The position numbers and the translations under genes are program-made. Below are positions 1-64,000 of a stretch of 64,000 nt of DNA, piece by piece. Below the pieces are notes generated by a model. It saw nothing but the letters and a program-made list of their open reading frames with translations, searched no databases and was not told the DNA's origin. Source of the stretch: Bigelowiella natans CCMP2755 (Eukaryota; Protista; Cercozoa); the NCBI GenBank assembly GCA_000320545.1, contig ADNK01003025.1:62001-126000 (forward strand), in the 5' to 3' direction. Position 1 is the stretch's first letter, and the number at the start of each line of letters is the position of its first letter.

Positions 1-3000
1 GGAATCAACATCGATATCGGAGGCACTGGCACTGAAGGAACCGGTGACATGAAGATTGATCAGTCCGAACTTCGTTTGATTTCCAGTACAAATGCTACCT
101 TCACCGCTGTCGGCGCCAGTATTCACGTGTACGATACCGTTCTAAGTGACACTACTGACATCAAAGAACGAGTATTCATGCGAGCTGACGCCGATATTTC
201 ATACCGTGGCTCTACGGTATGGAAGTCCATCCGGGGAATGGCACCAAAAGTAAACATCTCCCAGGATATGAAGGTGACGGAAGGTCATTTGATCATGGAG
301 TCCAAGGAATACTATGTGCACAAGGATACTTGGATTCAGAGTGAGGCAAACAACATCTACATCGAGGATTCTGCATCTGGTGCGGGTAGTATGATCACTG
401 AAAGCCCAGTTTACTGGAGGAGCAGTGGAGATATGACCTTTGAAGTACCGATGAAGGTTCTCGGTTCTGGAACCCTCACATTCCAGGCTGACAGCGACGA
501 GGACAACCTGGGAACTTTGTCTTTTGATTCGACTGCAAGCATCACTGTGTATGACACAGCGGTTCAGGAGTTGACATTCACTGGCGCCGATTTGATTCTG
601 GAGGCTGATGTTCAAGCAAGACAGGCCAACATTACAATCCAGGTTTCAAACCACACCGGTTCGACAATGAGTGTTGGTACGGGTTCTCTCGGTATGCAAG
701 TGAGCAATGCTGAGCTTGGTCGTATTAAGTCGGATACATCCGTAATGTTTGGAAGCTCGCAGACTGATAAGTTGTTTGTGGATGCTGCCACTTACACGCA
801 CACTCCAGTTGATTTGTACTTCGTTGCTATCGACAAGGTTGAGTTCAAGACGGGTGCTTCAAATTTCGCTACCCGTGTTGGTGTGCATTCAGATAAAGAC
901 ATCACTGTAAGTGCACCTGTGACTACTACTGGTGGTACTATGACCTGGGTTGCAAACGCAGACTGTGGTACTACTACTGGCAGTGGTACATTTACTAAGA
1001 CAGCGTCTGGATCGATCACCACAACAAATAACGCCATGTGGATCGAGGCATATGATGTAGTATTGGCTCCCTCAGGTGGAATCAACACTGGGTCGTCTGC
1101 CCTTCACTTTGTCGGTTGTGGTGTATCCATTGACGTTGGAGGATCTGGATCTCCTCGAACAGGAGAGATGGTTGTTGACCGAAGTGAGCTACAGCTTCTG
1201 ACATCGACGAACCTGACGTTCAATAGCGTCACAAAGAAGATCACAGTGTACGACAATTTAATCACTGATACAACGACAGTTGCAGATCGTGTGACTCTTA
1301 ATGCTCACACAAATATTGACTTTTTGGGTTCGTCGTTCTTCAAATCGTTGCGAAGTTCTTCTCCGATTATCAACATCAAGAATGACTTAAAGGTGACTGA
1401 AGGTCATCTTGTTTTTGAATCGGAAAGGTATAATGTGGATGGTGGTATTTGGATTCAAAGTGAGGCAAAGAACATCTATGTCGAACCACCTAAATCCGCC
1501 ACTGGTAAGATGTTCACAAGCACTCCTGTAACATGGAGGTCTGTAGGCGACTTAACCATTGAAGTACCGATTGACGTGAGCGGCTCTGGCTCGTTCATGA
1601 TGGAAGCAGATTATGACGAGGATGCAGCAGGGACAGTTTCTCTAAGCTCTGGCTCTCATGTAAAGGTTGTTGGAGCAACTGTAGACCAAGTTCTTATTAC
1701 TGCTGCAGATTTCATCCTTGAATCGAATATTATTGGGGCTCAGGCCAATGTTTCTATTCAAACTTCCAACCATTCTTCATCAAGAATTAGTGTGGGAAAT
1801 AACCATGGAGGTATGCACATTAGTGATTCAGAACTTGACCGAATAACTACCACATCGGAGCTTGTTATTGGAAGTCTGCAAACTGATCATGTGATATTTG
1901 ATGGAGCTACCCACGCCGACACCCCCGCTGATGTCTTCGTTGTGACGAACAATCGTGTTGATTTTGTTGGTGTGAAATCTACGTTCGCAACTCGAGTTGG
2001 AATTCACGCGGACAACGATGTTAGGGTTGTTGCACCCGTCGAAGTTTCCGGTGGTCCGATTACTATTGTTGCTGACGCGGATTGCAACTCCACCGGTGTT
2101 TTTATATTAAATCCACCAGGCTCAATCAAGGCTACGAATCAAGAGTTCACAATACAAGCACATGATGTTCACATGACTGCTCCTATCAACACTGGAAGTT
2201 CTCGAACGAATTTCATTGCCTGCAACGGTGCCTCAATCGATGTAGGTAGCGACGGGAACACCAATACTGGAGATATCAGAATATCGCAAGCAGAGTTGCG
2301 TCTAATTACCAGCACGAACCTAACGTTCAATGCGGAAAGCGCCAACATCAATTTGTACGAAACTGTCATCACTGACACCACAAATGTTGCTGGCCGTGTT
2401 TTCTTCACGGCTTCTCACAATGTAACTTTCTATGAATCGACAGTGTACAAGTCAACGAGATCTACTGCAAATAAAGTGAACATATCTTCCGACATGAAGG
2501 TTACCGAAGGACACTTGATTCTTGAAGCTACCCAATTTGACGTGGAGGCTGGTGTTTACGTTCAATCCGAAAAGGAAAATATTTACGTAGAGCCTCAAAT
2601 GTACGGAACAGGACATATGACCACAGATACCCCTGTGACATGGAAGAGCGCCAAAGATCTGACATTTGAAGTACCTATGGATGTCTATGGCACAAGCTCT
2701 CTAATGTTCCAAGCTGATAGTGATGAGGATGCTGACGGAACTCTCTCATTCTCCTCGATATCCAGTGTTACAGTTAGGGACCCAACAGTTGAGTCTATAC
2801 TGATTACGGCTGCGGACTTTATCCTCGAGCCTACCATCAATGGATCATTCGCTAACATTACCGTTCAGGTGTCCAACCACACCGGATCTACGATGAGTAT
2901 TGGAAGCAATAATGGAGGATTGCACCTCAGTGACACTGAATTGGATCGAATTTTCACGAAAACATCCTTGATCTTGGGAAGTACACAAACTGATATTGTC

Positions 3001-33000: not shown

Positions 33001-36000
33001 AGAATCTTCATTGATGCCGTGACACACACTGATACTCCAGCTGATGTTTATATCGTAAGTACGAACAGCATTGAGTTCATCGGAGGCCCATCTAGTTTCC
33101 TGTCGCGGATCGGAATACACGCGGATAACCATGTATTGGTTGATACCCCACTTGATGTATATCGGGGCACGGTGACTATCGTTGCTGATGCCACTTGCAA
33201 CAAGACCGGTGTTTTCACCAAAACAGCCACAGGTTCTGTGAATTCGCATAACAATGCCTTCTGGATTCAAGCGCATGACGTTAATTTCACACATCCTGGC
33301 CGCGTTACAGCTGGGCAATCTGCACTTCACTTTGTTGGATGCTCTAACATCTCCATCGATGTCGGTGGAGATGGAACTATGGCAACCGGTGATATGCGGG
33401 TGGATCGAACGGAGCTTCAGCTTCTAACGAGCACAAACCTTACGTTCAACTCAGAGACTGCAAATGTGCACGTGTATGATACAGTCATTACTGACACTAC
33501 CGAGGTACTGGACCGGGTGACTTTCAACGCGTACCACAATTTGGTGTTTGCTGGATCTAACGTGTTTAAGTCTGTGCGCGGTGTCGCTCCAACTATCAAC
33601 ATCACTGCAGATATGAAGGTTACAGAAAGCCATCTAGTCTTGGAGGCCAGGCATTACAATGTAGAAGGTGGTGTATGGATTCAATCTGAAGTTGAAAACA
33701 TTTACGTTGAACCAACGAAAGGAGCTTCCGGCTCTTTGATTACCAACACTCCGGTAACCTGGATGAGTGCAAATGATATCACTTTCGAGGTACCGATGTA
33801 TGTAACAGGTTCAGGCTCCCTAAACTTCAAGGCAGATAGTGATGAAAGTAGTGAAGGAACTCTTTCCTTTTCATCAGTATCAAATATCGAAGTTAGAGAT
33901 CCTTCTGTACACCAAATTCTCTTCACGGCAGGAGACATCATTCTTGAGTCGAACGTGAACGCACTTGCAGCTAACGTTACTGTTCAAGTTACGAATTACA
34001 CAAACTCTGTGATGAGTGTTGGTGCAAATCATGGCGGTCTTCATCTGAGCGATGCTGAGCTTGATCGTATCACCACTTCGACCACTTTGCAGCTTGGAAG
34101 TCTCCAAACTGACCTATTGTACTTGGATGGAGCTAGTCATTTAGACGTTCCTATCAATGTTTATCTTGTCAGTATGAACCAGATTGCTGTGACAGGAGCA
34201 CCGTCATCATTCGTAACTGAGGTTGAATTCCACGCAGATAACGATATCTGGGTAGATGCAAATCTAACCGTAAACAATGGAGACCTATCAATTATTGCGG
34301 ATGCAACATGCAACGGGACTGGCTTGTTCACGATAACACCGAATGGAGGTGTACGGGCAATGGATAGGGTGCTACTTATCCAGAGTCATGACGTTGACAT
34401 TTTCGGCCCAATCTACTCAGGAAATTCTGCTACGCACTTTGTAGGATGCTCTTCAGTCTCTATCGATGTTGGTGGAGATCATCCTACTAGCACTGGTCAG
34501 ATGAAGATCAACCAAACTGAGCTAGCAATGATCCAAAGTACGAACTTGACATTCACTTCTATCACGGCTGATATCAACCTGTACCAAATGGTTCCGGCTG
34601 ATACTGAAAAGGTGACGGGTAGACTATTCTTCACCGCAGCTGAACATTTGAACTTCATGGAAAGCACTATCTTTAAGTCACTTCGTGTATCAAGTCCTAA
34701 GATGAATATCTCTGACGACATTAAGATAACGGAGGGTCATTTGGTGCTCGAGGCCACTGAATTTAATGTTGACTCGGGTGTCTGGGTACAAAATGAAGGG
34801 CTTAACATCTACGTTGAACCAATGCAAGGAGGGACGGGCCACATGCGCACCGATACTCCTGTATACTGGCGCAGTGCAGGGGACTTGACGTATCAAGTTC
34901 CAATGACTGTTCTCGGCTCAGGAAACATTATGTTCCAAGCCGACAGTAACGAGGATGCTGACGGAACTCTTACATTTTATGAGGGAGCCAACGTCACTGC
35001 TAAAGTTCAATCTATCCAAGGATTTGTTCTTACCGGGGCAGATTTGATATTGAACTCTTACTTGGATGCCCTCCAGGCTAACGTAACGGTTCAAGTATCC
35101 AACTACTCTGGATCCACACTGAGCTTGGGTGGTTTCCACGGTGGCATGCACGTTAGTGATGCAGAGTTAGACCGAATCAAAACGGTCACTTCTCTCACTA
35201 TTGGAAGCCTTCAAACAGATCGTATTGTTGTTGATGGAGCTTCACACGTTGATACTCCAGCTGATTTCTACCTTATTAGTAACAACAAGATTGAATTTAT
35301 CGGAGCTCCTTCCAGCTTTGTAACCCGGGTTGGAATTCACGCAGACAACGATATCACCGTAGCATCTCCGATCACCGTGAACGGGGGCACTGTGACAGTT
35401 GTCGCAGACTCCACTTGTAATGCAACGGGAGTTCTGCACGTTGAACCTTCTGGATCAATCACATCTGTAAATAATGTGATGTGGATTCAAGCATACGATG
35501 TGAAAATCTTTGGACCATTGAACAGTGGTAACACAGCTATGCATTTCGTTGGATGCGATGGCGTGTCGATCGATGTTGGAGGTAACGGAGCATCTAGTAC
35601 AGGACAGATGCGTGTTGACAGGGGAGAGTTGAGACTTTTGACCAGCACAAACCTGACATTCAACTCAGAAAGCGCGAACATTCATGTATACGACACAGTG
35701 GTTTCCGATACAGCGACTATCACTGACAGGATCACATTTAATGCTGACAAGAATCTCGCTTTTGTCGGATCCAATGTGTTCAAATCAATCCGGGCTAACT
35801 CTCCAAAGATCAATATTTCAGCAGACATGAAAGTTACTGAAGGACATATGATTCTTGAGTCCCTTGAATATCATGTTGACGGTGGAGTATGGGTGCAATC
35901 TGAGACCTTGAACATCTATGTCGAATCGATCAATGGAGCAAGCTCAAAGATGGTAACTGGTACCCCTGTTACTTGGAGAAGCGCTCACGACCTAACCTTC

Positions 36001-42000: not shown

Positions 42001-45000
42001 AATGTTGTATCACTTAACGACACAATCTTCTCGAACTCCACCCTCGATGTCATCGGAACCATCACACTCCATGCGCGAAAGAATATCCATCTGATGGAGA
42101 ATGTCACCAACAATGCCGACTTCTGGGCAATCGCTGATACCGATTGCAGCGGAAGCGGTGTGTTCAAAGTTGGAAACGATACCTGGGTTGTCACCAACGA
42201 CAATCTGATGACCCTCAGAACCCATGATATCGCTCTCTACGGTCACATTGACACCGGTGTGGATACCATCAAGATGTCCGTCTGTCCTGGAATCTCCATG
42301 GATATTGGTGGTACTGGACATGGAACCGGCCAATTCCGAATTCAACAGTCTGAGCTACAGCTGCTGATCTCTAAGAATGTGTCGTTTACTAGTCCTACGA
42401 AGAACATCAGCGTATACCACACATTGCAAACCGATACAACGGATGTTGCCGGATTCTTCAAGTTCTATGCTGGAGATACCTTCAGACATGTCGAATCTAA
42501 CACATTCAAGTCCGTGCTTGCTATTGCTCCAAACACAATCGTCGCAAAAGATATTGTTGTAAACGTACACGAAGGGGATATGGACATCCAATCCGAGTTC
42601 TATACCGTAGACTCTGGAACCCATTTCTCCTCCGAGTATGCTGACATTCGCTTCCGCACGATCAGCGGAGCAATGCAAATGGAACTGACCTCGCCTTCCA
42701 CTTGGCGTGCTGCCGAGCACATCTTGGTGGAACCAGCCACCAACATATACGGAAGCGGTGCTGTACAGTTCTACAGTGACTACAACAACACAGGGTACGG
42801 AACGTTGACGTTCTCTGGAACCTCGAATCTCACTGTAAGGGTTCCAACAGTTGAGACTATCGTCTTCACAGCAGCAGATCTCGATCTTTCCTGCTTCGTG
42901 AATTCGATGAAAGCAAACGTTACAATCGAGGTTTCCAACACTCCTACCTCGACGCTAAGTGTTGGTGCGAACAATGGAGGCTTGCACTTGAGTGATGCTG
43001 AGCTTGATCGAATTAAGACTGCATCGGCACTCTCATTTGGGAGCCTTCAAACTACAAATATTTACTTCTCTGGAGTTACACATACCGATGTTCCATTGGA
43101 TGTTTTTGTGATTAGTCGCAACGCCATCCGATTCACTGGAACAACCAGTTTTGTTACAAGGGTTGGGTTACATGCACACAACGATATTGTGATCTCGGCT
43201 CCTGTTGACATCAGAAATGGGCCAGTTGATATTCAAACAGATGCTACGTGCAACAGTACCGGAACACTGTTTGTTAAATCTGCAGGTTCGCTTACAACTA
43301 ACAACAAAGAGTTGTTCTTGTCTGTGCACGACTTCGTTCTTGAGGGACCAGTATCTTCAGGAACTGCAGCGATTTACGTAACAGGGTGCAGTGGTGTTCA
43401 CATGGTCCTTGGTAATGATGGTACCGATAGTCGTGGTCAATTGAGGCTCTCTCAATCTGAGTTGAGTCAGTTGACTTCTACAAATCTAACTTTCACTACT
43501 GTCAACGCGGATATCACCGTCTTACAAACTGAAATCGCAGATACAGAGAAAATAAATGGCATTTTGACTCTTGACGCTGTTGGTACTGGAACACTGCGTT
43601 TCTTGGAAGACAGTACCTTCAAGTTTTTGCATACTTTCTCCGATAGTCACACGCATATCAACGCAAATCTTAATACTACTGAAAGTCACCTTAATATCGT
43701 GCTTCGCGAGCCTGATACTATGCTCAGGGTGAAGTCCGTAACGATGAATGTTCACAATGGACATATGAAGATTGATGCGCCTTACGCAAGCAGGAATAAG
43801 ATTAAGATCCTATCTCCAGCCACTTTGATGGCATCAGAAGATATTTTCTCTTCCGTTCCAATGTACGTTAATGGTTCTGGAGAGACTCACTTCCACAGTG
43901 ATACAGAACAAAACAACTTTGGTTCTTTAGTGTTCACAAAGACTTCTGGACTGTACCTCGAAGAAGGTGCGGACATCTCTACCAAAGGAACTCTCGTCTT
44001 TACTGCAGCAAACATGATCCTCGACTGTCCTATCGAAGCTCAAGCCGCTAATGTAACTGTCCAGACTTCCGGATACCAGAACTGGCCACTGTTGATTGGG
44101 GATAACTACACCATCCCCGGTTTCAAGCTCAGTGACCGTGAACTCGACTTCTTTAATACAACCTCAAGACTCGCGCTAGGAAGTATGCAAACAAGTTCCG
44201 TGGAACTTGGTGACGTATCCTACACAGGACTCGCGCAGCATCTTGATATTGTTGCAATCAACCAAGTTGTGTTCAACAAGAATGCGTCTTATCTACAGGC
44301 AGGAATGAGAACACAGATCATCAGCAAGGGCCACGTCGACATTCACTCGAACCTCACGATCGATAGTATCACTATCATCAAGAGTGACTTCGATTGCTCA
44401 AGGCATGGAAACGTCAACGTCACCGAGAGAGGCTCCATCGACACGCTCAACCATGACCTCAGGGTACATGCGTTCGATATGAACATTGAGGGTGAGATCC
44501 GAACTGGATCAGAAATCTTCTCTGTTCTAGTGTGTGACGGTGTCAACATCGACATCGGAAACGATGGAATGAAGACTGGAGACTTCAAGCTCTCCCAGGA
44601 TGAGCTTCGTTTCATCACGAGTACGAACATGACATTCATTACGCCTACTGCAAACATCAGCCTCTACTACACAATTCCTATTGATACTGAAAAGATCACT
44701 GGATTTGTCCGGTTGGACGCTGGCGACGCAATCACCGTACACGAGAGCTCTCAGTACAAGGCATTGATTATGCTTTCGGGACGTAAGACCGAGTTCCGTG
44801 CGGACACGCTTGTCTACGAGCGTGACATGTACATGGAGACCGGAGTAGGAGGTCGATTCGTCGTCTCCACTGTCAACCTTACGGCTACTTACGGAAGTAT
44901 TCGATTCCAAGGTGATGCGACTCGCAAGATCTATCAAACCAGTCCATCGATCTGGACCACCGGCACCGATATCGTCGTTGGTCCACCTATGGAAGTTGTT

Positions 45001-48000
45001 GGTACTAAGGAGCTATTCTTCAATAGCGACTTGCACCATCAGAACGCTGGGTTGATCTCATTCTCCCCTCTGTCGAAGATTGTTGTCACAGATCCAAATG
45101 TGGCAAGCATCAGGATGGAAGGAAGTGACTTGCACTTCCATCCAGATATGAGGGCGTTGCATGCAAATATCACTATTTATACTTCTCCTTACCCAGGGTC
45201 AGTAATGAGTTTGGGTACATTGGTGAAGGGTATGCATGTAGATGATGGTGAGCTTGATCGAATCTACACAACCGGTCAACTTACATTCGGACATCCAGGC
45301 ACCGAGAACATTTACATGAGCGGGTTCACTTACAGCGGAAATGCCCACAGTGCTCATTTTGTTGCTAGAGAGAGTATCCAAATGCAAGGCGGAGGCAACT
45401 CTTTCAGCACTCATGTGAATATGCTTGCTTGGAATAACAGCATTACGTCGAACACTTCGCTTGATGTTGATGGAACCTTGACTATGTATGCACAAGTGGA
45501 TATCGAGCTGTTCGAAAATGTGACTTCCGCTGGAATCACTAAGTTTGTCACAAACAAGAACTGTGATTCAAATGGAGTCTTAATTATTGGACCAAACGCT
45601 GTCGTTAGAACCTCGGACAACTACATGGAGATCACTGCAGAGGATATTGTCCTCTCAGGTCTCCTATCAACGGGAGTTGAGAGTCTTAAGATAGACGTAT
45701 GTGACAACACTTCATTCGTACTCGGGGGAGACAATCAGACAAATGAGCACGGAGTGGTATTAGAGAGGCTGGAACTCCAGCGCCTCACCACGAACAATTT
45801 GACCATTGAAATTCCAGATGGTTCAATTGACGTATACCACCTTGAAGCCCACGATACGCATGATGTGTCTGGATGCATCTACTTACACGTCTCTGATGGT
45901 GTCGACTTCACTTCGTTCACACAGGTAAAAGATTTGTCTGTTACCGCCCAGACCTTGGTGAAGATCCAAAAAGATGTCCTCATTACCCACAAAGATTTTG
46001 AGATTTTTGGTGACACGGACATCATCATTTCGAAGAACGTAAGCATAACTTCTCATCACGGATCTATTGTATTTAATACAAGCTCCGCCTCTACGATGGA
46101 AATGTATTCTCCATCTGTATGGAATGCATCCCACACAATCCTCGTTAATCCTCCCGTAACTATCGGTGGTGTTGAGAACTCAAGCTTCTACGCAGATACT
46201 AATGCTGATGGAACCGGAGTTATCATCTTGAGATCCAATGTAACTGTTGTTGATCCTTCTTTGGATCTCATCAGCATTCATGCAGCGGATTTCATTCTGG
46301 AGAGTTATTTAAGTGCCTATCAGGCTGATATCTTCATGGCAACATCTCCATATCCTGGATCGACGATGCTATTCGGTGCATCGACGGCTCATGGATTCCA
46401 TGTGACTGATAGTGAGGCTGATCGTATCTCAACTACTGGAACGCTCACAATTGGTGGTGAAGATACAGATATTATCGTTATCGATGGGTTAACTTTCGAT
46501 GGAGGAGTACTGTATACTCACATATCCGCTATGAAAACTCTGAAAAGTAACATCAGTTTTGTTGGTGGATATAGCTCCCTTGGTCAATCGGCAACCCTGC
46601 AAGCTATGCATGATATTAAGTCAGAGGCTGACTTGAACATCAATGGTGAGCTGGTAGTCCGTGCTGACTCTGACTGCAACGATAAGGGTGACTTCAGAAT
46701 TACAGTGAATGGTTCGGTTGAAACTGTGGACCAACATATTAATATCACTGCGCACGATATGCGTTTGAAGGGAAGACTCAGCTCTGGAACTGCTGATATT
46801 TTCATCATCATGTGCTCTGGAAGATCTGTTGACCTTGGTGGCATGGGTGGAACGCCTGGAGATATGGTCGTTCAAGAGAGCGAACTTGCTCTCTTGTTTG
46901 CGGATGATCTCATTGTAGAGACAGGCGCAGGCTTGGTAACAACCTACGATGTAACACTTGCTGATATGGCTAACGTCACAGGTCGTCTGTTGCTACTGGC
47001 CAACAGCACAGCCTTTGATGGGGTAATTACCTTAAGAAACATTGATATCTACGCCAGAACTGGTATTGCGATGGCTGGAAATATCACAATTATGGAGCCG
47101 CTCCTTTTCGATGCAGACCCTCTTTGCGATGGACATGGTGCGTTCTCCATTGGACCAAATTCCCACATCCGCAGTAGCAATAACCCAATCTACATTAAGG
47201 CCAGCGATATCGATATGGCAGGATTCCTTGATTCAGGCCATGCTCCAACCACAATTAAGAGTTGTTCTGGAGCGGATATCGATATTGGAGGCTCTGGATC
47301 CGGAAGAAATATTAAGATCGGAGCTACCGAAATGAGTTATTTCATCGCATCTGATCTTCACCTTTATGCTCTTGAGAGTAACATCACCCTCCATGAGATG
47401 GAATACAAGCATACCACTTGGGTACGCGATACCATCTATGCAAGCACCACTCATCCGGGCAGTGCTTTCATTGTGGGAAGTGGAGAATTTAAAGAGCTAA
47501 ATGTAACAGCTGCAAACGGGCTCTGGATTCAGGCAAATGTATCTACAAATCGTGGAGATATTATCCTGGAGGGTAACCAGGAAGATACGAATAAAGCAGA
47601 CATCAATATCCTTGCTGACGTCCATCTTACCGCCTGGAACGGGTCTATTTGGATGCAAAGATCGCAAGACGCAAAGATTACCATGGCAGCGCCAGCATTC
47701 TGGAAAGCTGCTGAAAATATTACCGTCTATGCTCCTTTGTTTGTCACCGGGGAATACAACTTCGATATTCATGTTGACAGTGATGTCGATGGTGTAGGTC
47801 TGATCGAGTTTACTGACTCGTCAAACCTAACCTTCACCAGCAACTTAATCACCGAATTCAACATAAATGCAGCTGATGTCGAATTTGCCAGCTGGACTGA
47901 CCTGAATAGGGCCAATCTAAACATCAAGATGTCTAAAGAGACTGAGTCTATGAATTTAGGCATGGATGATGGTGGCGGACTCACGATTACTGATGCAGAA

Positions 48001-49146: not shown

Positions 49147-52100
49147 ACACCCTCGGGCGGGTTACCTTCGGTGGTACACTCACTCACCACATCCAAATTG
49201 AAGACTTCGGAGTGTGGGTTCTTGTAGACAACATCGTGATTGCGGCAATGATGCACACCAATAGTACCGTGACCTTCCAAGGCATGGCAGGAAATGACTT
49301 CTGGAAACCATTGTTCGTTAAGTCTCTTGGAGATGTCATTGTGAATGCACCTGTGAAAACTCGTGAAATAGCAACTGTCTTCACTGACGATGATTGCAGC
49401 AGGAAGGGTGAACTCATCGTTTCTGATACCGGAAGTATGGATGCACGATCGAACCTCACAATCAGGGCAAGTGGAATGCAGATTAATGGATCAGTTCATT
49501 CTGATACAGAACTATTTGTGTACGTATGCTTTGGAGATTCAATCAAAATCGGAGGGCGGAAAGAAGAGGGGGCACAAGTTGTCCTACAAAGATCTGAACT
49601 GAAGAATCTGGGGTCATCGAATGATGTAAATCTCAGAACTCAGTTCGGGACTATCTCAATCCATGAGAGTGAATTCGGAGATTACACCAATATTCAGAAG
49701 CATCTCGTGCTTGATGCACAGCTGGTTCAGTTGAATAGTAGTCTTGATCTGAACTCTCTGCGACTCTTCTCTCAGCAAGGATTCATGGTTCCACACAATA
49801 TCACAGCGAGGAAATCTCTCTATATTGATACGGACTCGTATTGCAACAACTCCGGTACCTTATGGGTGAGAGATAATGCCTACATCCAAGGTAAATATAC
49901 AGATACAAGGTTCAAGGTAACAGATGTGAGGTTAGATGGATATATTAATACTGGTACCAAGAGTACCGTATTCGGATTCTGTCCTGGACACACTCTGGCA
50001 ATTGGAGGAGACATTGACCGACCGCAACTCTTCGGATTGAAGAGAACAGAACTTCAGCATATTTATGCTGAAAACCTTCTCTTTGAAGCAGCTTTGGCCA
50101 ATGTATCTATGTATTACACATATGATTCTGATACGAAGAGGATTCCAGGAACAACTGAAGTACGAGCAGGCCATGTAAGTATTGTTCCTCCCTTCGGAAT
50201 CGAGTATCAAGGCATCAACATCACAGCTACGGCAGGCTTAAATGTGAATGCTGATGTAACAACTAAGAATGGTGATCTCTACCTTGAGGGCGACGAGAAT
50301 GGAGTTGCAAATAGAAAACACGCTATTGTTTTCCACAACTCTACTCTTACCGCAATCGGAGGCTCCATTTATCTACAGCAGACAAAGAATCTTGAAATCG
50401 AAATCCACGCTCCTGGTGCATTCCAAGCGACCAAGGATATCGTGGTGAACGTTCCTTCTCAAATTCTTGGGGAGCAACAATTTAAGATTCATGCTGACAC
50501 AGACCAGGATGGTGTTGGTTTAATTGACATCAAAGCAAATGCAGATATGATGGTCGAAAGCCCAATGGTGACAAATTTCACCATTGAAGCAGCAGATTTT
50601 GAGTTAAGAAGTTTGTTGCACACGCGGCAAGCAGACCTCTACATCGATACCTCAGGCTACCCTGGTTCTACGATGAGACTAAATGGATCGAAGAGCGACT
50701 TCCACATGGATGACTTCGAGCTTGATGCCATCCTTACGTGGTCGTTCCTACGCTACGGTACAGTACAGACGGAGAACATTATTGTCACAGATTACCTATA
50801 TCTGAACTCAGCTCCGATTAAGTTCAAAACTGGTGGAGATCTTAAGTTCTTCGGAACAAGCACCCATCTAAACACCTCCCTCTTAGCTGAAGCTGACTCA
50901 GATATTGTAGTTCAATCAAATCTTGAAGTCATGAAAGAGGTAACAATGATGGCTGACTTCGACTGTACTGGCCAGGGTGATTTCAATATATCATCATTGT
51001 CAGAGATTGATTCCCACGGTTCCGTAATGAAACTTCGGGCACACGACATTGAAAACAAAGGTATTCTCCGTGCAACTGGAAATCACTTGGAGATCTCCGC
51101 TTGTAACGACCATCGAGTAGATGTTGGAGGAGAGTATAACTCTGCCGAAATGTCCCTGAAGGCCAGCGAGATTGATAACATGATCGCTAAAAACCTTACT
51201 ATCGTGATTCCAAGCGGTTTGATGAGAGTGTACAAAATGGACGCTGTTCATACCGCAGATATTGCAACGAAGGTTAATCTCATGGTACACAATGCTTCGC
51301 ATTGGGGTGAGATCAAATTTTTGGAACCAACGGTCTTCAAGTGGCTTCATGCATCCGCTGGAAGAATCGAAGTTCACAAGTCTATTCAGACTTACGTGAA
51401 CGATCTGTACCTACAATCTCTTCTTCCCGGTGTGTCAATGCTCATCGGGCCTAGTGTCAACCTGACTTCAACGGCAACTAGTATTGTTGTTGACAACTAT
51501 GCCAATAACACAATGCTAGTCCACACTCCTACAACTTGGAAGGCAGCTCAGGACGTCCTTCTCACCAGACCTGTAAATGTTACTGGTTCACACCATGTGT
51601 ACTGGAGCAGTGATATGCACAACACTGGAGCTGGTACTCTAAGGATCACGGAAACCTCTAAGGTCGAGGTTACATCAGACGATGTCTCTGAAGTTACTCT
51701 CGTAGGAGCCGATATGGAAATTGATGCTCTTGTACAGGGACACAAGGCCGATGTGTATGTCAAAAACACTTGGTCTGGATTAACGACATTGAGTCTCGGA
51801 AATGTGGCTCAAGGTCTGCACTTGACGAATGTTGAGATGAACTTTTTCGACACCACTGGATCATTAAGATTTGGTGGAGAGTCCACAGAAACACTGAAGG
51901 TGAACAACATCGACTACCTCGGAAGGCCATATGTAGTTCGCTTGCAATCCACGGAAACGGTGAATAGTAGTATTCTGGTTGGTGGCAGCGCAACCTTCCA
52001 CCAAGATTACCTTGAAATCTTTGCCAGAAATAATATTGTGGCTTCTGCCAACGTAACATCTGGAGGTCTGACTACTATCAAATCTGACTATGATTGTAAC

Positions 52101-55100
52101 GGAGTCGGTGATCTCAACATTACAAACTCAAGCGTAGTTCGAACTTTGGATAAGATCCTCAGAATCCAGGCTTACGACATTGATTTGGAAGGAAAGATGA
52201 GCTCAGGATTAGAGTCAACCGAAATCTCCACGTGTACATCACATTTGATCGACTTTGGTGGTAACGGTTTGACAAGCGGATACATGATCATTGATCGCTC
52301 TGAAGTGAATCATATGACAGCAGCAAATCTAACTATTGTTGCAGAGCATGGACACGTGAAAGTTTATGAGCTCAATACGTTCGACACTGAGAATCTACAA
52401 GTTGTGACTATCAACTCAACTGGAACGTATGGATTAGTGTCGTTCGAGGAATCCTCATCTTTCCGACACCTAAGATCGTTCTCAGAGAACACCACGATGA
52501 TTCATGCTGACATTTTCACAACTGAAGGATCAATGTATCTGGATGCAGATACAGAAATTCTCCAGAGCACAATAGATGTCACCGTTGCATCTATCGATAA
52601 GCTTTATCTGCAGAGCATCGGTGTTGGAAAGATTACTTTCACTGCAGGTGCAAATGTGACTGCAAGACAAGGTATGTTCTGGAATGCACCAACCACGGTG
52701 ATGGGCGAAGGATACTTGGTGATCGATGGAGACTCTGACGCAGATGCTGTTGGAACCATCCACATTTCACCAATTACGAATATCAAAATATTGAATACTG
52801 TAGATCAAGTATTCATTGCAGCTGCTGATATGATCCTTGATGGAAGCTTTGATAGTTATTCAAGCGTACTGCAGATCACAGTTACAAACAGCACAGGATC
52901 AACAATGCGTCTTGGTGGAACTCAATCTCATTTCCATTTGACTGATACCGAGATCAACCGCATTTCTCATGCAAACCATTTGATCATTGGTGGAGATCTC
53001 ACTGAAAACATAATAGTCAATGGAATCTCATACACAAAGAATCCTAACATTGTCAGACTTGTTGCTGAGAAGAACGACGAAAGTAATATCACCTTCGAAG
53101 CGACACCATCTACTTTCGTGACATCTCTAAAGCTTGTTGCACATGACAATCTAGTCGTCAACACAAACGTGACAACTAGCAGCGACCTGCAGATTGTCAC
53201 TGACTCAGATTGCAGTGGACAAGGATCTGTTGTAGTAGCGTCCGAATGCATGGTTCAGTCAGGCATACAGACCCTCATCGAGGCACATGATATCGTATTG
53301 TTTGGTATCATCAAGGCCGTTGATATGCCAATCACTATCAAAACGTGTGTTGGCCGAGACATCACAGTTGGAGGAGAAGGGCAGCCACATCATGACCTAG
53401 AAGTAGAGCAGGCAGAGCTTCAACAGCTCCGCAGCACCAACTTGACCTTCCTCACCACGGAGGGAACTATCCGTGTGCACAACATGAAAACAGTTGACAC
53501 CAAGGACATCGTCGGAATTGTGACCTTCAACGCTTCCGGGCAAGCAGGACACATCACCTTCGAGCAAAATGTCCACGTCAAGGGCATGCACGCACTGTCT
53601 TCGAACGGTATCACAATCAACAGTACCCTCACGATGACAGAGTCCAACATGGTAATCAACTCGGACCAATTCCCATCCAGCCAGTATGGTGTCAGAATCC
53701 ATCATGGTATCGGACTGATATCTCAGTACGGTATCATTCTGCTACAGCAGGATAGCGTCACAGCTCAGATCCACCAGACTACTCCTACATACTGGGAGGC
53801 GTCTGAGGGAATGACCGTCGGCGCGCCTGTAGTTGTGGACGGTGTCGGCAGACTTGTCGTCAACACCGACCGCGAGGCTGACGGAAAGGGAACTTTCGTG
53901 CTCGAAGCTACCTCCAACATCACCGTCACATCAGCAGTGGAGCAAGTTCACATTACCGCCGGAGACATCCGATGGGAGTGCCACTTGCAGGCCCTCAACT
54001 CTCCGATCGAGATCCAACCATCTCCATCGAGTGGATCATTGATGGCCCTTGGACTTACTGGAGATGGAGACGGTCTCCACATCAGCGATGTTGAGGCTGA
54101 CCGCATCCATACAACCAACACCTTAACGCTCGGTGGCAACCAAACTGAACGAGTCAAGTTTGACGGACTCACATACACCGACCGCGCAAGCGCAGTGTAC
54201 ATCCTTGCTGATAAGGTTCTTGGGGGTAACGTGACGTTCCACGGCACACCAGTGACCTTTGCTCAGCCGGTGTACATCAAGGTGCGCGACAGCGTCGACA
54301 TGCTCACTAACGTGACCATCAATGGATACACGTCCATCATCCTCGACGCTTGGTGCGAGCATGCAGGCGCTCCTGGGACGCTGTACCTCAGCGCAGGCAA
54401 CTTCCTCACCACACTTGACAACCTCCTCGAGGTGACTGCACGCGATGTAATCCTACATGGTGAGATTCACACAGGTATGGACGACATCATGTTCACCACC
54501 TGCCAGCACAACTCCATCGGAATCGGTGGCACTGGCAACGAGGAAGGATTGATGAACTTCAACCGCACTGAGCTTTCAAACCTCAAGTGTGATGACCTCA
54601 AGTTTGAGACCCCGGCCGGACAGATCAACGTCCATCTGGTTGAGGACCTCGATACTGCACGGGTAACTGGAGCTATCACCTTCAATGCATCCTCTGAGGA
54701 AGGAAAGATCATCTACAACGATGACGCCACCTTCAAAGAGCTGTTCTCCTGGGCCGGAAACGGTACTATCATCAGAAGCAACGTAGAAATCATGTCTACG
54801 GTTGGCGATCTGCTCTTCGAAGGCGATCACGAGAGTGAGAGCATCATCGAAAAGCACATCGATATCGAGTCCCATGTATCTATCCACGCCAAGAGGCACC
54901 TGTTCCTGCAACCATCAGCTACAGGATTCCTACGACTGGCTGTTCCTAGTAACTGGACCGCATGGGAAGGCATGACCGTTTACTCGCCACTCGAAGTAGT
55001 TGGCGCTGGAAAATGGTATGTTGATGCAGACCTCAACAACAACTATACCGGTACTGTGATGTTTGCGACAACCTCGAACGTCACGGTGACAAGTCGCCAG

Positions 55101-58100
55101 GTCTCTGAAATTACGCTCGCAGCTGCAGACATGCAGATGTGGCCGTTCTTCCAAGCCTACATGGCTGACTTGATCATCAAGACCTCCTACACCGTGGACT
55201 CCACGATTGCACTCGGAGCGACATCTGCTCACTTCCACCTGACCGATCGTGAGATGGACAACATCAACACGACGGGTACTATTACCATTGGAGGTGCCGA
55301 CACCAGCAATATCATTGTTGATGGTCTCACCTACAACGGAAGCGCCAGCAAGTTCTACTTGAATGCTATGAGGCAGCGCAACAGTACTATCAAGGTGGTC
55401 GGCTCGGATGTTTGGTTCGTGCAACCAATAGAAATCAATACTCGTGCTGCATTCGACATCGGCGCAAGTGTAGATGTATTGGGAACTATCCGAGTGGATG
55501 CTGATGCAGACTGTATCGCTCCAAGAGCAACCTCGAAGGTATCTGATGGAGTCACCATGACTTCAAACAACCACCATATCTACTGGAGAAGTCACACTCT
55601 CGAGTTGAATGGTCGCTTCGTCGCGGGTAGCATGCCTATCGAATTCTCTATGTGTCCTGGAGGCGCAATTGATATCGGTGGCAACGGCGACGGACTCGCA
55701 CACTTCAGTCTGAATAAGACCGAATTGCAGCACCTCGAATGTACTAACGTGACTTTCGAGACCGTCTCTGGTGACATCGACGTGTACGAGGTTGAAATTA
55801 CTGATACAGAACTCGTGATCGGACACGTGTATCTGAATGCGTCTTCGAACATGGGTAAGATCAACTTCAAGGGCCAGAACGCAGCATTCAAGACTCTCTA
55901 TGCGTATGCAGGAAATGGTACAACCATCTCCTCAAACATCCGCACTACAGAGCATGATTTGATTATTGAGGGAGACCACTCCCACAGTGGTACGGTTCCA
56001 AAGCATATCGACATCCTGGTCCCAGGTCTATCATTGACCTCCGAACAGGCCATGTTGAGACTGCAGCCGGGTGGATCAGGTTTCCTACGCCTTATGGCTC
56101 CTGGAAACTGGACTGCGAAGGATTACATCTCCATGGATGCGCCATTGGATATCCGCGGAAGTGGTGCTCTCGACATCAAGGCCGACAGCGATCACAACGG
56201 ATATGGATATTTCCGTGGTAGCAACATGACGAACCTGAACAGCGATATCACCTTGGTTTCGATCCGTGCTGCTGATGTAGAGTTGTTGGGAAGCTACAAG
56301 ATGCTTCACGCAGACTTTGTGGTGATTCCAACATGGCATCTGCCTGAAGTATCTCTAGGTGCTACGGTAATGCCAGGTCTTCATCTAACCGACCTAGAGC
56401 TCGACTACGTGACGACAAACGCCTCTGTGATCATTGGAAATCATGTAACTCGCAAGATCCACATGGATGGTGTCACTTATGAGAACCCAGCAACTAATTT
56501 TATCATTAGAACTTCTGCTAAATTAGAATCCAATGTTACTGTATCTGGGGGCGCATGTACTTTCTTGCCAATACTGAATATGTCGAGTGGACACTGGACC
56601 AACATCCAAACAGATATCACTGGATATGATGATATCTATATCCAGACAGATATCGATTGTGATACAATCGGAAATCTTTACGTCGGAGCTGGTTCAAAGG
56701 TTTATAGCGCAAAGAGAAGCTACTACACAACAGCCGACATTATCTTGGATGGACGCATTGAGAGCCATGACTCCATCCGTTTCTCAGTCTGCAGTGGTGA
56801 TTCGATTCAGAGCGGCGGGTACACGCAATATGCCCATGTCCATCTTGATAGACATGAATTAGCGCGTTTGGCCACGCAGAATCTAACCATTGCGTCTACG
56901 AACGGTAGAGTGATGATATACAACATGGAAAGTGTTGATACCAAGGATATCAGCGACCATGTCGTTCTAGATGCATCAGGAATTTCCGGTCAAATGGAAT
57001 TCCAAGAAAGAACATTCTTCAAGTCCCTCCATGCAATGTCTGGATTTGGTATGGTTGTCAATGATAACATTACAACTACTGTAGAAGACATTACGATCGA
57101 GAACGTCCACACTATCTTCGAAAACTTTGAGCCTCTTGGTTACAGTGGTGGGTATAAGATCTGTTCGAACTACGCAAGTAGTCCAAAGAACGAATATGTG
57201 TCCACTGCAAACGTAGGAGAGTGTGCCAATTCATGTCTGTCCAAGGGAAGTTGCGATTACTTCACCTGGTTCCCAAGTACTGCAGGTGCAATGGCCAATA
57301 GATGCTATTTGGTCTACGATTGTGGCACTGTTGAGCTAGTAGAGGATGATGTTGCGCAGCTGAAGGGGCAGAGCTACAAGAAACGTTTCGAATGGCAACT
57401 TGCGATGCAGATTGCTGCAGATGACGGCTTTGCCTATGATTCTTATCACTGGCAATCCAACACTTCTACCCTGAATACGAATGCGAACATTTCTGACAAC
57501 GTTAATGCGAAGTTCAGTACCTTCAACTCCGTTCAAACGAGAAGTATTAAGGTTTGCGTCGAAACGTTGAACAACTGTTTCTACCAAGGACTGAGTTACC
57601 CCGTATCTAATATGGCTGAACTCTTTAATGGAGTCTACCAACCGTACACTGTTGACGACGCTAGCATCACATCCGTGATGAATGCGACTGGATTCCGCAA
57701 TTGCCCACCTGTAAAGGCGGGATTCAATATCAAGTATGGCAATAACAAAGCTAGATTTGGTTTCTTCAACAATATTCCATCCCAAGCTTGCAATGTTGTG
57801 AGCGAGGCAGATGGAGTAATTGGAATCGGTATCAACGGAAAAGACTGCTGCCCAGCAGGAGCAGGATACACGAACTACTTCGTGAGCGACTACACCAACA
57901 CTGGGCATCAAGCTTCTAAGAAGGCATGGGTCTTTGTGAGGGAGCATAAGACTAATCCTCTCTGGGATATCATCGTTAAGAACTTTACAACGTGGAAGAG
58001 TGCTCAGCATATTGATCTCCAGGAAAGTACTGAAGGTAGGGTGAAGATCTCGAGTCCATTCGTGTTCCGAGCCAACTCTGGTATCAGGATTACTACTCCT

Positions 58101-61100
58101 GTAGAGGTTTGGGGTACTGGAAAGTTCCTAATCGATAGTAACTTTGATGCTGATGGTCATGGAGTGCTAAACATGAGACCGACATCTAATTTTACTGTCA
58201 TGACTTCCGAAGTTACACACGTTACGGTCAGTGCCTCAGACTGGATCCTTGATAGTCATTTCGATGCAAAGCATGCTGATCTTTGGATTGAAAACTCCAA
58301 CTCTGGTAACTCAACCATGAGACTTGGAGGACCTGGTCCGGACTTCCACCTCACTGATAGCGAAATCGATAGAATCAGCACAACAATGACTGTTCAGTAT
58401 GGTGGAGATCGCACAGAACGAATCATCTTGAATGGAGTTTCGGATTCCTCATCTTCGAGAGAAATTCAGCTCATTGCAAGAAAGAACAGTAAAAGCAATG
58501 TAACCTTCGAGGTTACACCTTCGACATACGTTCAGCCTCTCAAGATCATTACTACAAGCAACTTGGTAGTGAACACAAACGTATCCACAACTGACAAGAT
58601 CCATGTCGTTCAAGACTCTGATTGTAGCGGACAAGGATCTGTTGTAGTAGCGTCCGAATGCATGGTTCAGTCAGGCATACAGACCCTCATCGAGGCACAT
58701 GATATCGTATTGTTTGGTATCATCAAGGCCGTTGATATGCCAATCACTATCAAAACGTGTGTTGGCCGAGACATCACAGTTGGAGGAGAAGGGCAGCCAC
58801 ATCATGACCTAGAAGTAGAGCAGGCAGAGCTTCAACAGCTCCGCAGCACCAACTTGACCTTCCTCACCACGGAGGGAACTATCCGTGTGCACAACATGAA
58901 AACAGTTGACACCAAGGACATCGTCGGAATTGTGACCTTCAACGCTTCCGGGCAAGCAGGACACATCACCTTCGAGCAAAATGTCCACGTCAAGGGCATG
59001 CACGCACTGTCTTCGAACGGTATCACAATCAACAGTACCCTCACGATGACAGAGTCCAACATGGTAATCAACTCGGACCAATTCCCATCCAGCCAGTATG
59101 GTGTCAGAATCCATCATGGTATCGGACTGATATCTCAGTACGGTATCATTCTGCTACAGCAGGATAGCGTCACAGCTCAGATCCACCAGACTACTCCTAC
59201 ATACTGGGAGGCGTCTGAGGGAATGACCGTCGGCGCGCCTGTAGTTGTGGACGGTGTCGGCAGACTTGTCGTCAACACCGACCGCGAGGCTGACGGAAAG
59301 GGAACTTTCGTGCTCGAAGCTACCTCCAACATCACCGTCACATCAGCAGTGGAGCAAGTTCACATTACCGCCGGAGACATCCGATGGGAGTGCCACTTGC
59401 AGGCCCTCAACTCTCCGATCGAGATCCAACCATCTCCATCGAGTGGATCATTGATGGCCCTTGGACTTACTGGAGATGGAGACGGTCTCCACATCAGCGA
59501 TGTTGAGGCTGACCGCATCCATACAACCAACACCTTAACGCTCGGTGGCAACCAAACTGAACGAGTCAAGTTTGACGGACTCACATACACCGACCGCGCA
59601 AGCGCAGTGTACATCCTTGCTGATAAGGTTCTTGGGGGTAACGTGACGTTCCACGGCACACCAGTGACCTTTGCTCAGCCGGTGTACATCAAGGTGCGCG
59701 ACAGCGTCGACATGCTCACTAACGTGACCATCAATGGATACACGTCCATCATCCTCGACGCTTGGTGCGAGCATGCAGGCGCTCCTGGGACGCTGTACCT
59801 CAGCGCAGGCAACTTCCTCACCACACTTGACAACCTCCTCGAGGTGACTGCACGCGATGTAATCCTACATGGTGAGATTCACACAGGTATGGACGACATC
59901 ATGTTCACCACCTGCCAGCACAACTCCATCGGAATCGGTGGCACTGGCAACGAGGAAGGATTGATGAACTTCAACCGCACTGAGCTTTCAAACCTCAAGT
60001 GTGATGACCTCAAGTTTGAGACCCCGGCCGGACAGATCAACGTCCATCTGGTTGAGGACCTCGATACTGCACGGGTAACTGGAGCTATCACCTTCAATGC
60101 ATCCTCTGAGGAAGGAAAGATCATCTACAACGATGACGCCACCTTCAAAGAGCTGTTCTCCTGGGCCGGAAACGGTACTATCATCAGAAGCAACGTAGAA
60201 ATCATGTCTACGGTTGGCGATCTGCTCTTCGAAGGCGATCACGAGAGTGAGAGCATCATCGAAAAGCACATCGATATCGAGTCCCATGTATCTATCCACG
60301 CCAAGAGGCACCTGTTCCTGCAACCATCAGCTACAGGATTCCTACGACTGGCTGTTCCTAGTAACTGGACCGCATGGGAAGGCATGACCGTTTACTCGCC
60401 ACTCGAAGTAGTTGGCGCTGGAAAATGGTATGTTGATGCAGACCTCAACAACAACTATACCGGTACTGTGATGTTTGCGACAACCTCGAACGTCACGGTG
60501 ACAAGTCGCCAGGTCTCTGAAATTACGCTCGCAGCTGCAGACATGCAGATGTGGCCGTTCTTCCAAGCCTACATGGCTGACTTGATCATCAAGACCTCCT
60601 ACACCGTGGACTCCACGATTGCACTCGGAGCGACATCTGCTCACTTCCACCTGACCGATCGTGAGATGGACAACATCAACACGACGGGTACTATTACCAT
60701 TGGAGGTGCCGACACCAGCAATATCATTGTTGATGGTCTCACCTACAACGGAAGCGCCAGCAAGTTCTACTTGAATGCTATGAGGCAGCGCAACAGTACT
60801 ATCAAGGTGGTCGGCTCGGATGTTTGGTTCGTGCAACCAATAGAAATCAATACTCGTGCTGCATTCGACATCGGCGCAAGTGTAGATGTATTGGGAACTA
60901 TCCGAGTGGATGCTGATGCAGACTGTATCGCTCCAAGAGCAACCTCGAAGGTATCTGATGGAGTCACCATGACTTCAAACAACCACCATATCTACTGGAG
61001 AAGTCACACTCTCGAGTTGAATGGTCGCTTCGTCGCGGGTAGCATGCCTATCGAATTCTCTATGTGTCCTGGAGGCGCAATTGATATCGGTGGCAACGGC

Positions 61101-64000
61101 GACGGACTCGCACACTTCAGTCTGAATAAGACCGAATTGCAGCACCTCGAATGTACTAACGTGACTTTCGAGACCGTCTCTGGTGACATCGACGTGTACG
61201 AGGTTGAAATTACTGATACAGAACTCGTGATCGGACACGTGTATCTGAATGCGTCTTCGAACATGGGTAAGATCAACTTCAAGGGCCAGAACGCAGCATT
61301 CAAGACTCTCTATGCGTATGCAGGAAATGGTACAACCATCTCCTCAAACATCCGCACTACAGAGCATGATTTGATTATTGAGGGAGACCACTCCCACAGT
61401 GGTACGGTTCCAAAGCATATCGACATCCTGGTCCCAGGTCTATCATTGACCTCCGAACAGGCCATGTTGAGACTGCAGCCGGGTGGATCAGGTTTCCTAC
61501 GCCTTATGGCTCCTGGAAACTGGACTGCGAAGGATTACATCTCCATGGATGCGCCATTGGATATCCGTGGAAGTGGTGCTCTCGACATCAAGGCCGACAG
61601 CGATCACAACGGATATGGATATTTCCGTGGTAGCAACATGACGAACCTGAACAGCGATATCACCTTGGTTTCGATCCGTGCTGCTGATGTAGAGTTGTTG
61701 GGAAGCTACAAGATGCTTCACGCAGACTTTGTGGTGATTCCAACATGGCATCTGCCTGAAGTATCTCTAGGTGCTACGGTAATGCCAGGTCTTCATCTAA
61801 CCGACCTAGAGCTCGACTACGTGACGACAAACGCCTCTGTGATTATCGGAAACCATATCACTAGGATTGTTGTTATTGACGGACTTACGTATGAAAATCC
61901 AGCTAAGAACTTCACGATCATCACGTCGGCAACCCTTGAATCTAACGTGACCTTCCACAAGCATGCAAACTCATTCTTGCCAACTCTGCACGTCACTTGT
62001 GGTCATGATATTCACATTACGTCTAATGTAACCGTTCGTGCCGTGATGCGAATGTATGCGGATACCGATTGCGATACCCAAGGTGATATCAACGTCGGGC
62101 CAAATGCAACCATTACAGTCGACAGCGACATCTTCATGTCTGCTAACGATATGGATCTCCAAGGCTTCATTATTAATCCAGGACAGAACTTCTGGTATGA
62201 TGTCTGCCCTGGACGATCCATCCAGCTGGGAGGAATTACCAGGAATACACCTGATGCCCTTGTCCTCTACCAAACAGAGGTCGATCACATCTTAACAGAA
62301 AATATGACGTGGTCTTCCAAGGTAGGGGTAATTGAGGTCTATAATATCCTCCTTGAAGAGTCGCAAGATATCTACAGAGTTACATTGGATGCATCTCTGG
62401 GTGGCCGTACTAACTTCTTTGAGCCAACATGGTTCGGAGAAATACTGGTCAACTCGGGCAACGGAACCTTCATTCACAAGAACATTACTGCCACGCACGG
62501 AAATGCGATCTTCGAAGGAAATTGGAACCTCACTGCAACAGTTCCAAATGATATCTTCATTGGAAAACATGTCACCATCCGTGCTCATCATGGAAAGATC
62601 TTCCTAAATCCTACTATGACTGGTAGAATGCAGATGATTGCACCTCTTGGCTTAGTTGCGGGAGAGGACATTATGTTTGGAGCACCGATGGATATCCACG
62701 GGGATGGCTCGGTGTATTTCAGAACAGACTACAACGTGGTAGGATATGGTGAATTGTTCTGCTTCAGGACATCAAATATCTCCATTGTGTCTAAGAACGT
62801 CACGGAAATTAAGTTTATCAGCAAAGACATCCATTTCGAATGCTGGCTTGAGGCGAATATGTCACATGTTCACTTCATTACCTCAGCATCTCAAAATTGG
62901 GCAATGTCTATTGGACACTTCCATGAAGGTTACCATCTCTCAGATGAGGAGCTTGATCACGTTGAAACACGTGGTGATCTCATCATCGGGGACGAAACAA
63001 CTGGTACCATCTACTTTGATGGCGCTACTTATCTTGGAAACGCATTCCAGCTGAATATTACCAATGCACGTGATCCTACCACATCGGTGATCTTCCACAA
63101 TAAGTCGTCTCTATTCACACAAGAAATGTGGTTGCGAACTCGTCACAACGTATCAGTTAGAACAAATGTGACTGTGAAGTATGGGGAAACTCATATGTTC
63201 GCGGATACCCGTTGTGCAAGAACCGGGACGATTTACATCGCACCTGAAGCCACATTCAGCAGTGCCGACAACGTCATTGATATCCGTACGCACGACATGA
63301 TAGTCGATGGATATCTAAGATCTGGAAGTGAATCACTTTCTATCGAAGTGTGCCCAGACAATGTTGTCCAAGTGGGAGGAGATGAAATCGAACATCAGGA
63401 CCTTGTGCTGTTACAGCCTGAGCTTCAGCACATTGAATGTAACAACATCAGCTTCCACGCTCCAAATGGCCATGTACATCTCTACAGGATCACACAGTAC
63501 GACTTGGCAACCATCGCTAACAAGTTCCATGTGAATACGTCTGTTGCTAATGGAAACGTCACCTTCCATGAGAATGGTGATTTCCACATTCTGTACGTGT
63601 TTGCTGGCCATACGACTGTGATTGAGGCTAACCTTACAACCTCGATGGGAGCAATGTGGTTCCTTTCTTCGTTGAAGGACACCAACGTGAGTGTCGATCT
63701 ATCTACTCCGAATTGGAATCTGGATGAAAGAGAACTATTTGCCTTCCAGTATGATGAGGCTGAACACGGAGCCGGAATTATCGAAGTGAAGAGCAATGTA
63801 ACTATCGAACCTCACACTGACCTTTACATGAAGTCTGACCCAAGAGGTCTAGTCTTCAGAAACCACATCATGATTGATGCTGGGGACAATGTGTACATTG
63901 AGAGTCCAATGCTAGTAACAGGCGATGGTTCTCTTTACATCAACGCCGACAGGAAAGATGCAGGAACCGGAAACTTCAGTCTTGGCCAACTGTCACCAAT
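49113..64000 (+). CDS. Giant repeat glycoprotein, part 2 (frame +3, 3'-partial, about 4,960 codons, no stop before window end); continuation of part 1
   Basis: Manual translation from 49113 gives FHLTLAEYKYLNTLGRVTFGG..., and the window ends ...YINADRKDAGTGNFSLGQLSP in the same frame. The same repeat motifs recur (DxDC, IGG...EL, DxDxDGxG, FHLxDxE). Every + strand ORF the track lists after 49113 is in frame +1, consistent with frame +3 running off the end without a stop. Frame +3 is open from 49080 (after TAA at 49077). Confidence 0.93.
53217..56431 (+). repeat. Direct repeat D, copy 1 (3,215 bp; partner at 58629-61843)
   Basis: Offset is 5,412 bp. The whole series of shadow ORFs is duplicated. 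One synonymous difference was seen (CGC at 56154-56156 vs CGT at 61566-61568). Confidence 0.94.
57126..57383 (+). other. PAN/apple-like domain inserted in the giant protein (frame +3)
   Basis: Translation: GYKICSNYASSPKNEYVSTANVGECANSCLSKGSCDYFTWFPSTAGAMANRCYLVYDCGT...QSYKK. The pattern EC-x3-C-x5-C-x2-F-x-W...CYL is the PAN/apple core. Confidence 0.75.
57393..57941 (+). other. Fibrinogen-C-related globular domain resembling the coral skeletal organic matrix protein 5 (USOMP5) family (frame +3)
   Basis: Translation: WQLAMQI...FAYDSYHW...NAKFSTFNSV...IKVC...AELFNGVY...GFN...KARFGFFNN...C..ADGVIGIG...AGAG...AWVFVR. The motif order matches my recollection of that family (WTLVMK, F.Y.S..W, ETK, GFN, KARIG, DS.IG.G, YILV). 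Not verified by a search. Confidence 0.6.
58629..61843 (+). repeat. Direct repeat D, copy 2
   Basis: Near-identical to 53217-56431; the flanks are homologous but diverged. Confidence 0.94.

Follow-up and report, generated by a model that had tools for sequence, protein, structure and literature searches.

The stretch of DNA analysed here (the window, 64,000 nucleotides, C712:62001-126000) is part of a contig of the Bigelowiella natans CCMP2755 assembly (91.4 Mb, 3,736 contigs); contig coordinates are window coordinates plus 62,000, and all features of the gene that holds the window are on the + strand. The window is the middle of one gene, which encodes a titin-sized, membrane-anchored protein of ~37,600 amino acids. 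Frame +1 is without stop codons over window positions 1-49143 (16,381 codons) and frame +3 over window positions 49080-63998 (4,973 codons), while the remaining frames have hundreds of stops each. At the composition of the window, 16,381 consecutive open codons would occur by chance with a probability of ~10^-399. This is in agreement with the first-pass annotation, made from the window, which described one repeat-encoding frame with a single 1-nt shift. The same annotation considered the gene to be intron-free and open at both ends, which is correct inside the window, but contig C712 holds both gene ends, five small introns outside the window and a second frame break upstream. The gene spans 113 kb of the contig, where the stop-free stretches are 37528-50973, 50853-111143, 111080-146908 and 147234-150314.

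Three 5' exons (C712 36793-36862, 36971-37034 and 37248-37438), with a signal-peptide-like start recognized by eye, precede a giant exon of 109,340 nt (C712:37568-146907), which encloses the entire window, and two 3' exons (C712 146982-147197 and 147260-150317) complete the gene with 11 transmembrane helices, a tail and the stop codon. The giant exon provides 97% of the coding sequence, which is very unusual when compared with the mean exon length of 159 nt in this genome. As calculated from the exon borders, the full product has ~37,645 amino acids (~4.07 MDa), so that the earlier estimate of >21,000 residues, near the titin class, was right about the giant size, the whole product being larger still. 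The exons were searched singly, and the joined model was used only for the length and mass estimates and for scoring the frame breaks.

The signal-peptide-like start is followed by a WSC domain (C712 37666-37911, E 2e-13), a region of ~390 residues (C712 37950-39100), ~77 solenoid units (C712 39106 to ~126295, or 39.1-126.3 kb, with ~20 units upstream of the window), NHL repeats (C712 ~126722-127714), an IPT/TIG array (C712 ~127724-144679, with 49-52 domains detected and ~50-60 estimated), Cys-rich repeats of the Ephrin_rec_like type (C712 ~144680-146608), a beta-sandwich, the 11 transmembrane helices and a cytosolic tail. The succession of the TIG array and CxxGxYC Cys-rich repeats is confirmed in the giant protein. 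Pfam finds nothing at the cut-off in the four window stretches scanned, and the earlier statement that Ig-type domains are absent is valid for the window, but 49 Pfam IPT/TIG matches are found just downstream of it. The ~390-residue region between the WSC domain and the solenoid has no Pfam or NCBIfam match; it looks beta-propeller-like, and it would sit near the tip of the rod. Inside the window, the solenoid array is broken into at 57.1-58.0 kb by a Cys-rich, PAN-like cassette of ~300 residues (window 57105..57980), whose PAN/apple match (E 0.002-0.004) is below the cut-off.

A profile search finds 54 full units of ~370 residues in the window, each consisting of two homologous half-modules (hhalign 95%, E 2e-8), with a weak super-period of six units. 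The repeat array that had been described is therefore real, but its true repeat is ~370 residues long, and it is interrupted by the PAN-like cassette. In the frame +1 part (window 1..49143), the units are mostly 40-65% identical, being more diverged beyond ~38.7 kb, and in the frame +3 part (window 49080..63998), the identity to the core units is 25-35%. The unit has no Pfam or NCBIfam match. T, S, V, G, I and D are abundant in the solenoid protein, where cysteines recur as a pair every ~370 residues, this pair being invariant across the algal units. N-x-S/T sequons are more frequent than expected (418 observed versus 255), with five fixed positions that are each occupied in 24-34 of 34 units. 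Across the array, the mean unit identity is 37%, with only 4 of 2,701 pairs above 90%, and no DNA tandem repeats are found in it with Tandem Repeats Finder. This is therefore an old array and not an assembly loop.

Within the array, a block of 3,243 bp is present in two copies (window 53202..56444 and 58614..61856) that are 99.8% identical and flanked by diverged homologous sequence. The copies differ in 6 of 1,079 codons, and all differences are synonymous, which shows purifying selection in the array; if ~1/4 of random changes are silent, then six silent-only changes would arise by chance with a probability of ~2e-4. Duplicates with 92-96% DNA identity are also observed (window 5638-11502 and 15080-23621; contig C712 55321-63484), with offsets of four and six units (4,452, 6,657 and 6,660 bp), and they show that blocks of the array have been duplicated and have undergone gene conversion. 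A further copy of the block at window 42508..46472 (90% identical, mosaic) is found on an orphan contig, C99 (1-3988, 3,988 bp), which is an open frame throughout and in which tracts of 100% identity alternate with tracts that differ by up to 44%. Given this contig, the true array may be longer, or C99 may be allelic.

Two representative units (window 32020..34239) are predicted by AlphaFold to form a parallel beta-helix (predicted local distance difference test score, pLDDT, 95; predicted TM-score, pTM, 0.81). The best PDB matches of this model are tailspikes, polysaccharide lyases and TPS adhesins, and the TM-score with bacterial and phage Atlas models is 0.86-0.89 by target. Foldseek searches of the PDB and viral sets give no match at E<=0.001. 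A unit of 370 residues is predicted to comprise ~15-16 stacked coils with a length of ~7.5 nm, and therefore ~77 units would span ~0.55-0.6 µm. With ~0.2 µm predicted for ~60 TIG domains, the rod would extend ~0.8 µm from the cell. The parallel beta-helix proposed from the letters of the window is thus supported by the model. For the visible part, where a rod of ~0.4-0.5 micrometre had been proposed, a length of 0.4-0.45 µm fits ~15-16 coils per unit. The suggested filament, extracellular and glycosylated, is in line with the likely signal peptide, the conserved sequons and the predicted C-terminal membrane anchor.

The proposal of an apparently undescribed family needs revision, since the unit has clear bacterial homologues. 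At the level of sequence, it is shown to be homologous to filamentous-haemagglutinin-like exoproteins, matching seven bacterial-type proteins of 2,373-4,885 residues, including 'beta strand repeat' proteins of Rhodopirellula and Roseiconus and exoproteins with a TPS domain or DUF5649. The best single-unit scores against these homologues are 64-122 bits, with at most 4 bits for reversed controls, and one homologue with a TPS domain is encoded on a bacterial contig, next to the genes for succinate dehydrogenase and 2-oxoglutarate dehydrogenase. In a quick, unrooted tree, the bacterial modules form one clade, and two environmental fragments, 55-65% identical, are placed within the core algal units; two scans of metagenome contigs gave no match. 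The bacterial homologues are almost Cys-free, and relative to them the algal unit appears to have gained its Cys pair and its fixed N-glycosylation sites. The TPS secretion domain (PF05860) is not found at the algal N-terminus, where only WSC is matched. From this distribution, transfer from bacteria is the simplest reading.

Also, the protein is not a free fibre but is membrane-bound and belongs to a wider family found in protists. Its transmembrane region matches 787 clusters, including proteins of Albugo and Cantina, with environmental relatives at 54-65% identity, and the C-terminal beta-sandwich and multipass domain are homologous across this unnamed family, whose long members consist of TIG arrays, Cys-rich repeats and the C-terminal transmembrane domain. 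The solenoid unit is in none of the best 150 family records, many of which are 5'-incomplete. A paralogue on contig C3558 (19285-46401, minus strand, at least ~8,400 residues, 66 detected TIG domains) shares this layout. Its frame is broken once, near 32.9 kb, and the 70 kb examined contain no solenoid; by eye, its N-terminal domain looks reelin-like, and its Cys-rich region has an insert resembling a propeller.

The transmembrane domain is covered by neither a Pfam family nor a PDB sequence. Its model (pLDDT 84, pTM 0.85) has 11 helices with basic inner loops, and this positive-inside pattern fits an N-out, C-in topology. Among the fold matches, TMEM16 alone recurs, and those to OSCA, TMEM63 and TMC are weaker. 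The root-mean-square deviations are high, and sequence-profile tests for the TMEM16, OSCA and TMC families (PF04547, PF02714, PF07810) give no match; therefore, the TMEM16/OSCA likeness, which is weak and confined to the fold, is a lead only. In an alignment of 60 members, the intramembrane charges R337, E601 and D684 are invariant or nearly so, and E404, a valine in the giant protein, is kept in 90% of the family. These conserved charges suggest that the domain does more than anchor the chain. B. natans has at least six anoctamin genes (on C3479, C221, C2839, C1335, C3149 and C737) and at least three OSCA-family genes (on C1850, C800 and C2544). Orthology with meckelin is rejected, as the true meckelin (TMEM67) gene is elsewhere (C2910:10813-13706, E 3e-121) and the two are not alignable; PF09773 (meckelin) does not match the giant protein, 1 of 60 relatives matches it at E 9e-4, and the Foldseek comparison gives E 0.26.

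The reading frame is broken twice, at C712 ~50905-50925 (break 1, upstream of the window) and at window 49096..49113 (break 2), where one base is missing inside a conserved unit motif. For break 1, the highest score (471 bits) is that of two surplus T, located in two T runs, whereas one missing base reaches 461 bits and an intron 423 bits at most. For break 2, it is that of one missing base (266-268 bits), an intron reaching at most 241 bits and none scoring as well as a read-through with X. No slippery site is present at either break, with no slippery heptamer at break 2, and together with the lower intron scores this rules out introns and programmed slippage. The assembly is built from Sanger plus 454 reads (PMC12730881) and is prone to such indels, so the breaks look like sequencing errors. 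The models of the Joint Genome Institute (JGI) cover separate gene pieces only: Bigna1|144722 (1,095 residues) is identical to the C-terminus of the giant protein, and model 144719, the first piece, stops just beyond break 1, and therefore the public annotation splits the gene. A transcript contig (L024, JGI 3300017138) begins in the giant exon, lacks the two 3' introns and continues in frame into the transmembrane exon. The 3' end is thus spliced onto the giant exon, and bacterial contamination is ruled out by this spliced transcript and the 100% match to the Bigelowiella model. Further downstream on the contig, a PP1-like Ser/Thr phosphatase gene is recognized by eye (C712 174884-175750, minus strand).

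The interpretation preferred here, to which we give about an even chance, is that the gene specifies a membrane-anchored glycoprotein rod of ~0.8 µm for adhesion, prey contact or sensing, which couples contact to the cytosol. The chain, a polytopic membrane protein of ~4 MDa, would enter the endoplasmic reticulum by its signal peptide and become N-glycosylated and disulfide-bonded at fixed sites, the ectodomain forming a long rod at the surface of the cell or flagellum and the 11-helix domain anchoring it with the tail inside. The rod, possibly working like the bacterial haemagglutinins, would keep glycan-binding modules at a distance of ~0.8 µm from the cell. The WSC domain at the tip and the PAN-like and NHL inserts may attach to glycans of prey, substrate or partner cells, and the membrane domain may relay contact to the cytosol, the role proposed for CRMPs in alveolates (PMC9670195). 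It is possible that an ancestral TIG/Cys/transmembrane gene captured a bacterial adhesin module, which would then have been amplified by intragenic duplication and conversion. Several points weigh against this interpretation. Both breaks stand in the assembly, indel errors being likely and not proven; the sole transcript covers the last ~4 kb only and none of the solenoid; the signal peptide is called by eye, and the JGI model begins 98 residues earlier; the rod length uses an assumed rise of 4.8 Å per coil and not model coordinates; and the direction of transfer rests on distribution, with a unit tree that is quick and unrooted.

The same filament could also have another function if the 11-helix domain is a distant channel or scramblase of the TMEM16/OSCA/TMC superfamily and the rod is its gating tether, being a one-chain version of the hair-and-channel arrangement of mastigonemes and PKD2. 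Both the channel and the mastigoneme-like arrangement are doubtful. The boldest form, in which a single chain of ~4 MDa (possibly longer given C99) combines a ~0.8-µm hair from a captured bacterial adhesin with a divergent TMEM16/OSCA-like channel gated by this hair, is equally tentative. Still less expected is that cleavage from the anchor turns the ectodomain into a secreted structural fibre, for an extrusome, a coat or a mucus thread, the transmembrane part being only a trafficking handle. B. natans has extrusomes, and the bacterial TPS relatives are released filaments. TgCRMPa is proteolytically processed (PMC9670195), but no cleavage site is identified in the giant protein, and the conservation of the transmembrane domain and tail across the 787 clusters is more than a simple anchor would require.

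It is improbable that one or both breaks are real in CCMP2755, giving a truncated product of ~4,600 or ~24,600 residues or none at all (a recent null allele). The breaks are present in the assembly, and break 2 is outside a long homopolymer, its position not being fixed by the scoring. On the other hand, 109 kb are without in-frame stops, the changes downstream of break 2 are silent only, the 3' end is transcribed and spliced, the surplus T in T runs at break 1 are typical of 454, and the paralogue also shows one break. That the array length is an assembly expansion, the real gene being much shorter, is very improbable. Such an expansion, which had been named at the outset as a point to be checked, would fit the four duplicated DNA segments (92-99.8% identity) in the array, but the low unit identity with so few pairs above 90%, the lack of DNA tandem repeats, and the diverged flank and silent-only differences of the near-identical block all count against it, and the orphan contig C99 points to collapse instead.

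The rod preferred here raises the questions of how a chain of ~0.8 µm is translocated into the endoplasmic reticulum, glycosylated and shipped, whether adhesin modules of bacteria are reused by algae for surface filaments, and what the role of the widespread, unnamed 11-helix protist family is; if the hair-gated channel were true, then the 787 clusters would be an unrecognized branch of tethered mechanosensors. Such genes escape notice because gene models are split at indel errors and poly(A) RNA-seq reaches the 3' end only. The building blocks are all of familiar types, and no earlier description of the gene, the domain combination, the size or the anchor family was found in searches of the literature.

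When compared with known systems, the solenoid is closest to TpsA/filamentous haemagglutinin (for example WP_143543846, WP_289162412 and the DUF5649 carriers), with which the homologous beta-helix module shares loop and helix motifs. These TpsA-type and Planctomycete relatives have 2,400-4,900 residues, are Cys-free and in several cases carry an N-terminal TPS domain, whereas the giant algal protein has ~77 units, the Cys pair, fixed sequons and a eukaryotic membrane anchor. The C-terminal architecture is that of the protist TIG(n)-Cys-rich-11-helix family (Albugo CCA22724.1, Cantina and the C3558 paralogue), with a homologous transmembrane domain (E to 1e-109), in which family the longest of the best 150 members has 7,926 residues, the giant protein being far longer and having the solenoid. 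Fibrocystin/PKHD1L1 also combines a TIG array with a beta-helix but is single-pass, unlike the multipass giant protein, and its G8 domain has no match in the stretches scanned. The Cys-rich, beta-rich, multipass layout is in common with meckelin. The CRMPs (TgCRMPa/b, PfCRMP1-4 and those of Tetrahymena) have a signal peptide, a glycan-binding domain, Cys-rich repeats, a multipass C-terminus and a cytosolic tail (PMC9670195). Their Cys-rich receptor-like repeats and multiple C-terminal transmembrane helices recur in the architecture of the giant protein, which is far larger, with TIG and solenoid arrays added, and MAR/Kringle domains (CRMPa/CRMP1 type) have no match in the stretches scanned. 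With respect to size, the protein is in the class of PKZILLA-1, titin and the Omnitrophota giants, the latter predicted to reach 85,804 residues. PKZILLA-1 has 45,212 residues, ~25% above titin (PKZILLA paper), and ~37,645 residues would exceed the titin length implied there; among the eukaryotic proteins found, only PKZILLA-1 would be longer. The PKZILLAs were likewise split by automatic annotation, with poly(A) data showing only the 3' end (10.1101/2024.01.29.577497), as for the giant algal gene. Unlike these other giants, the algal protein is an extracellular membrane protein, neither enzyme nor cytoskeletal, and to our knowledge it would be the largest of the membrane or secretory-pathway proteins predicted so far in eukaryotes.
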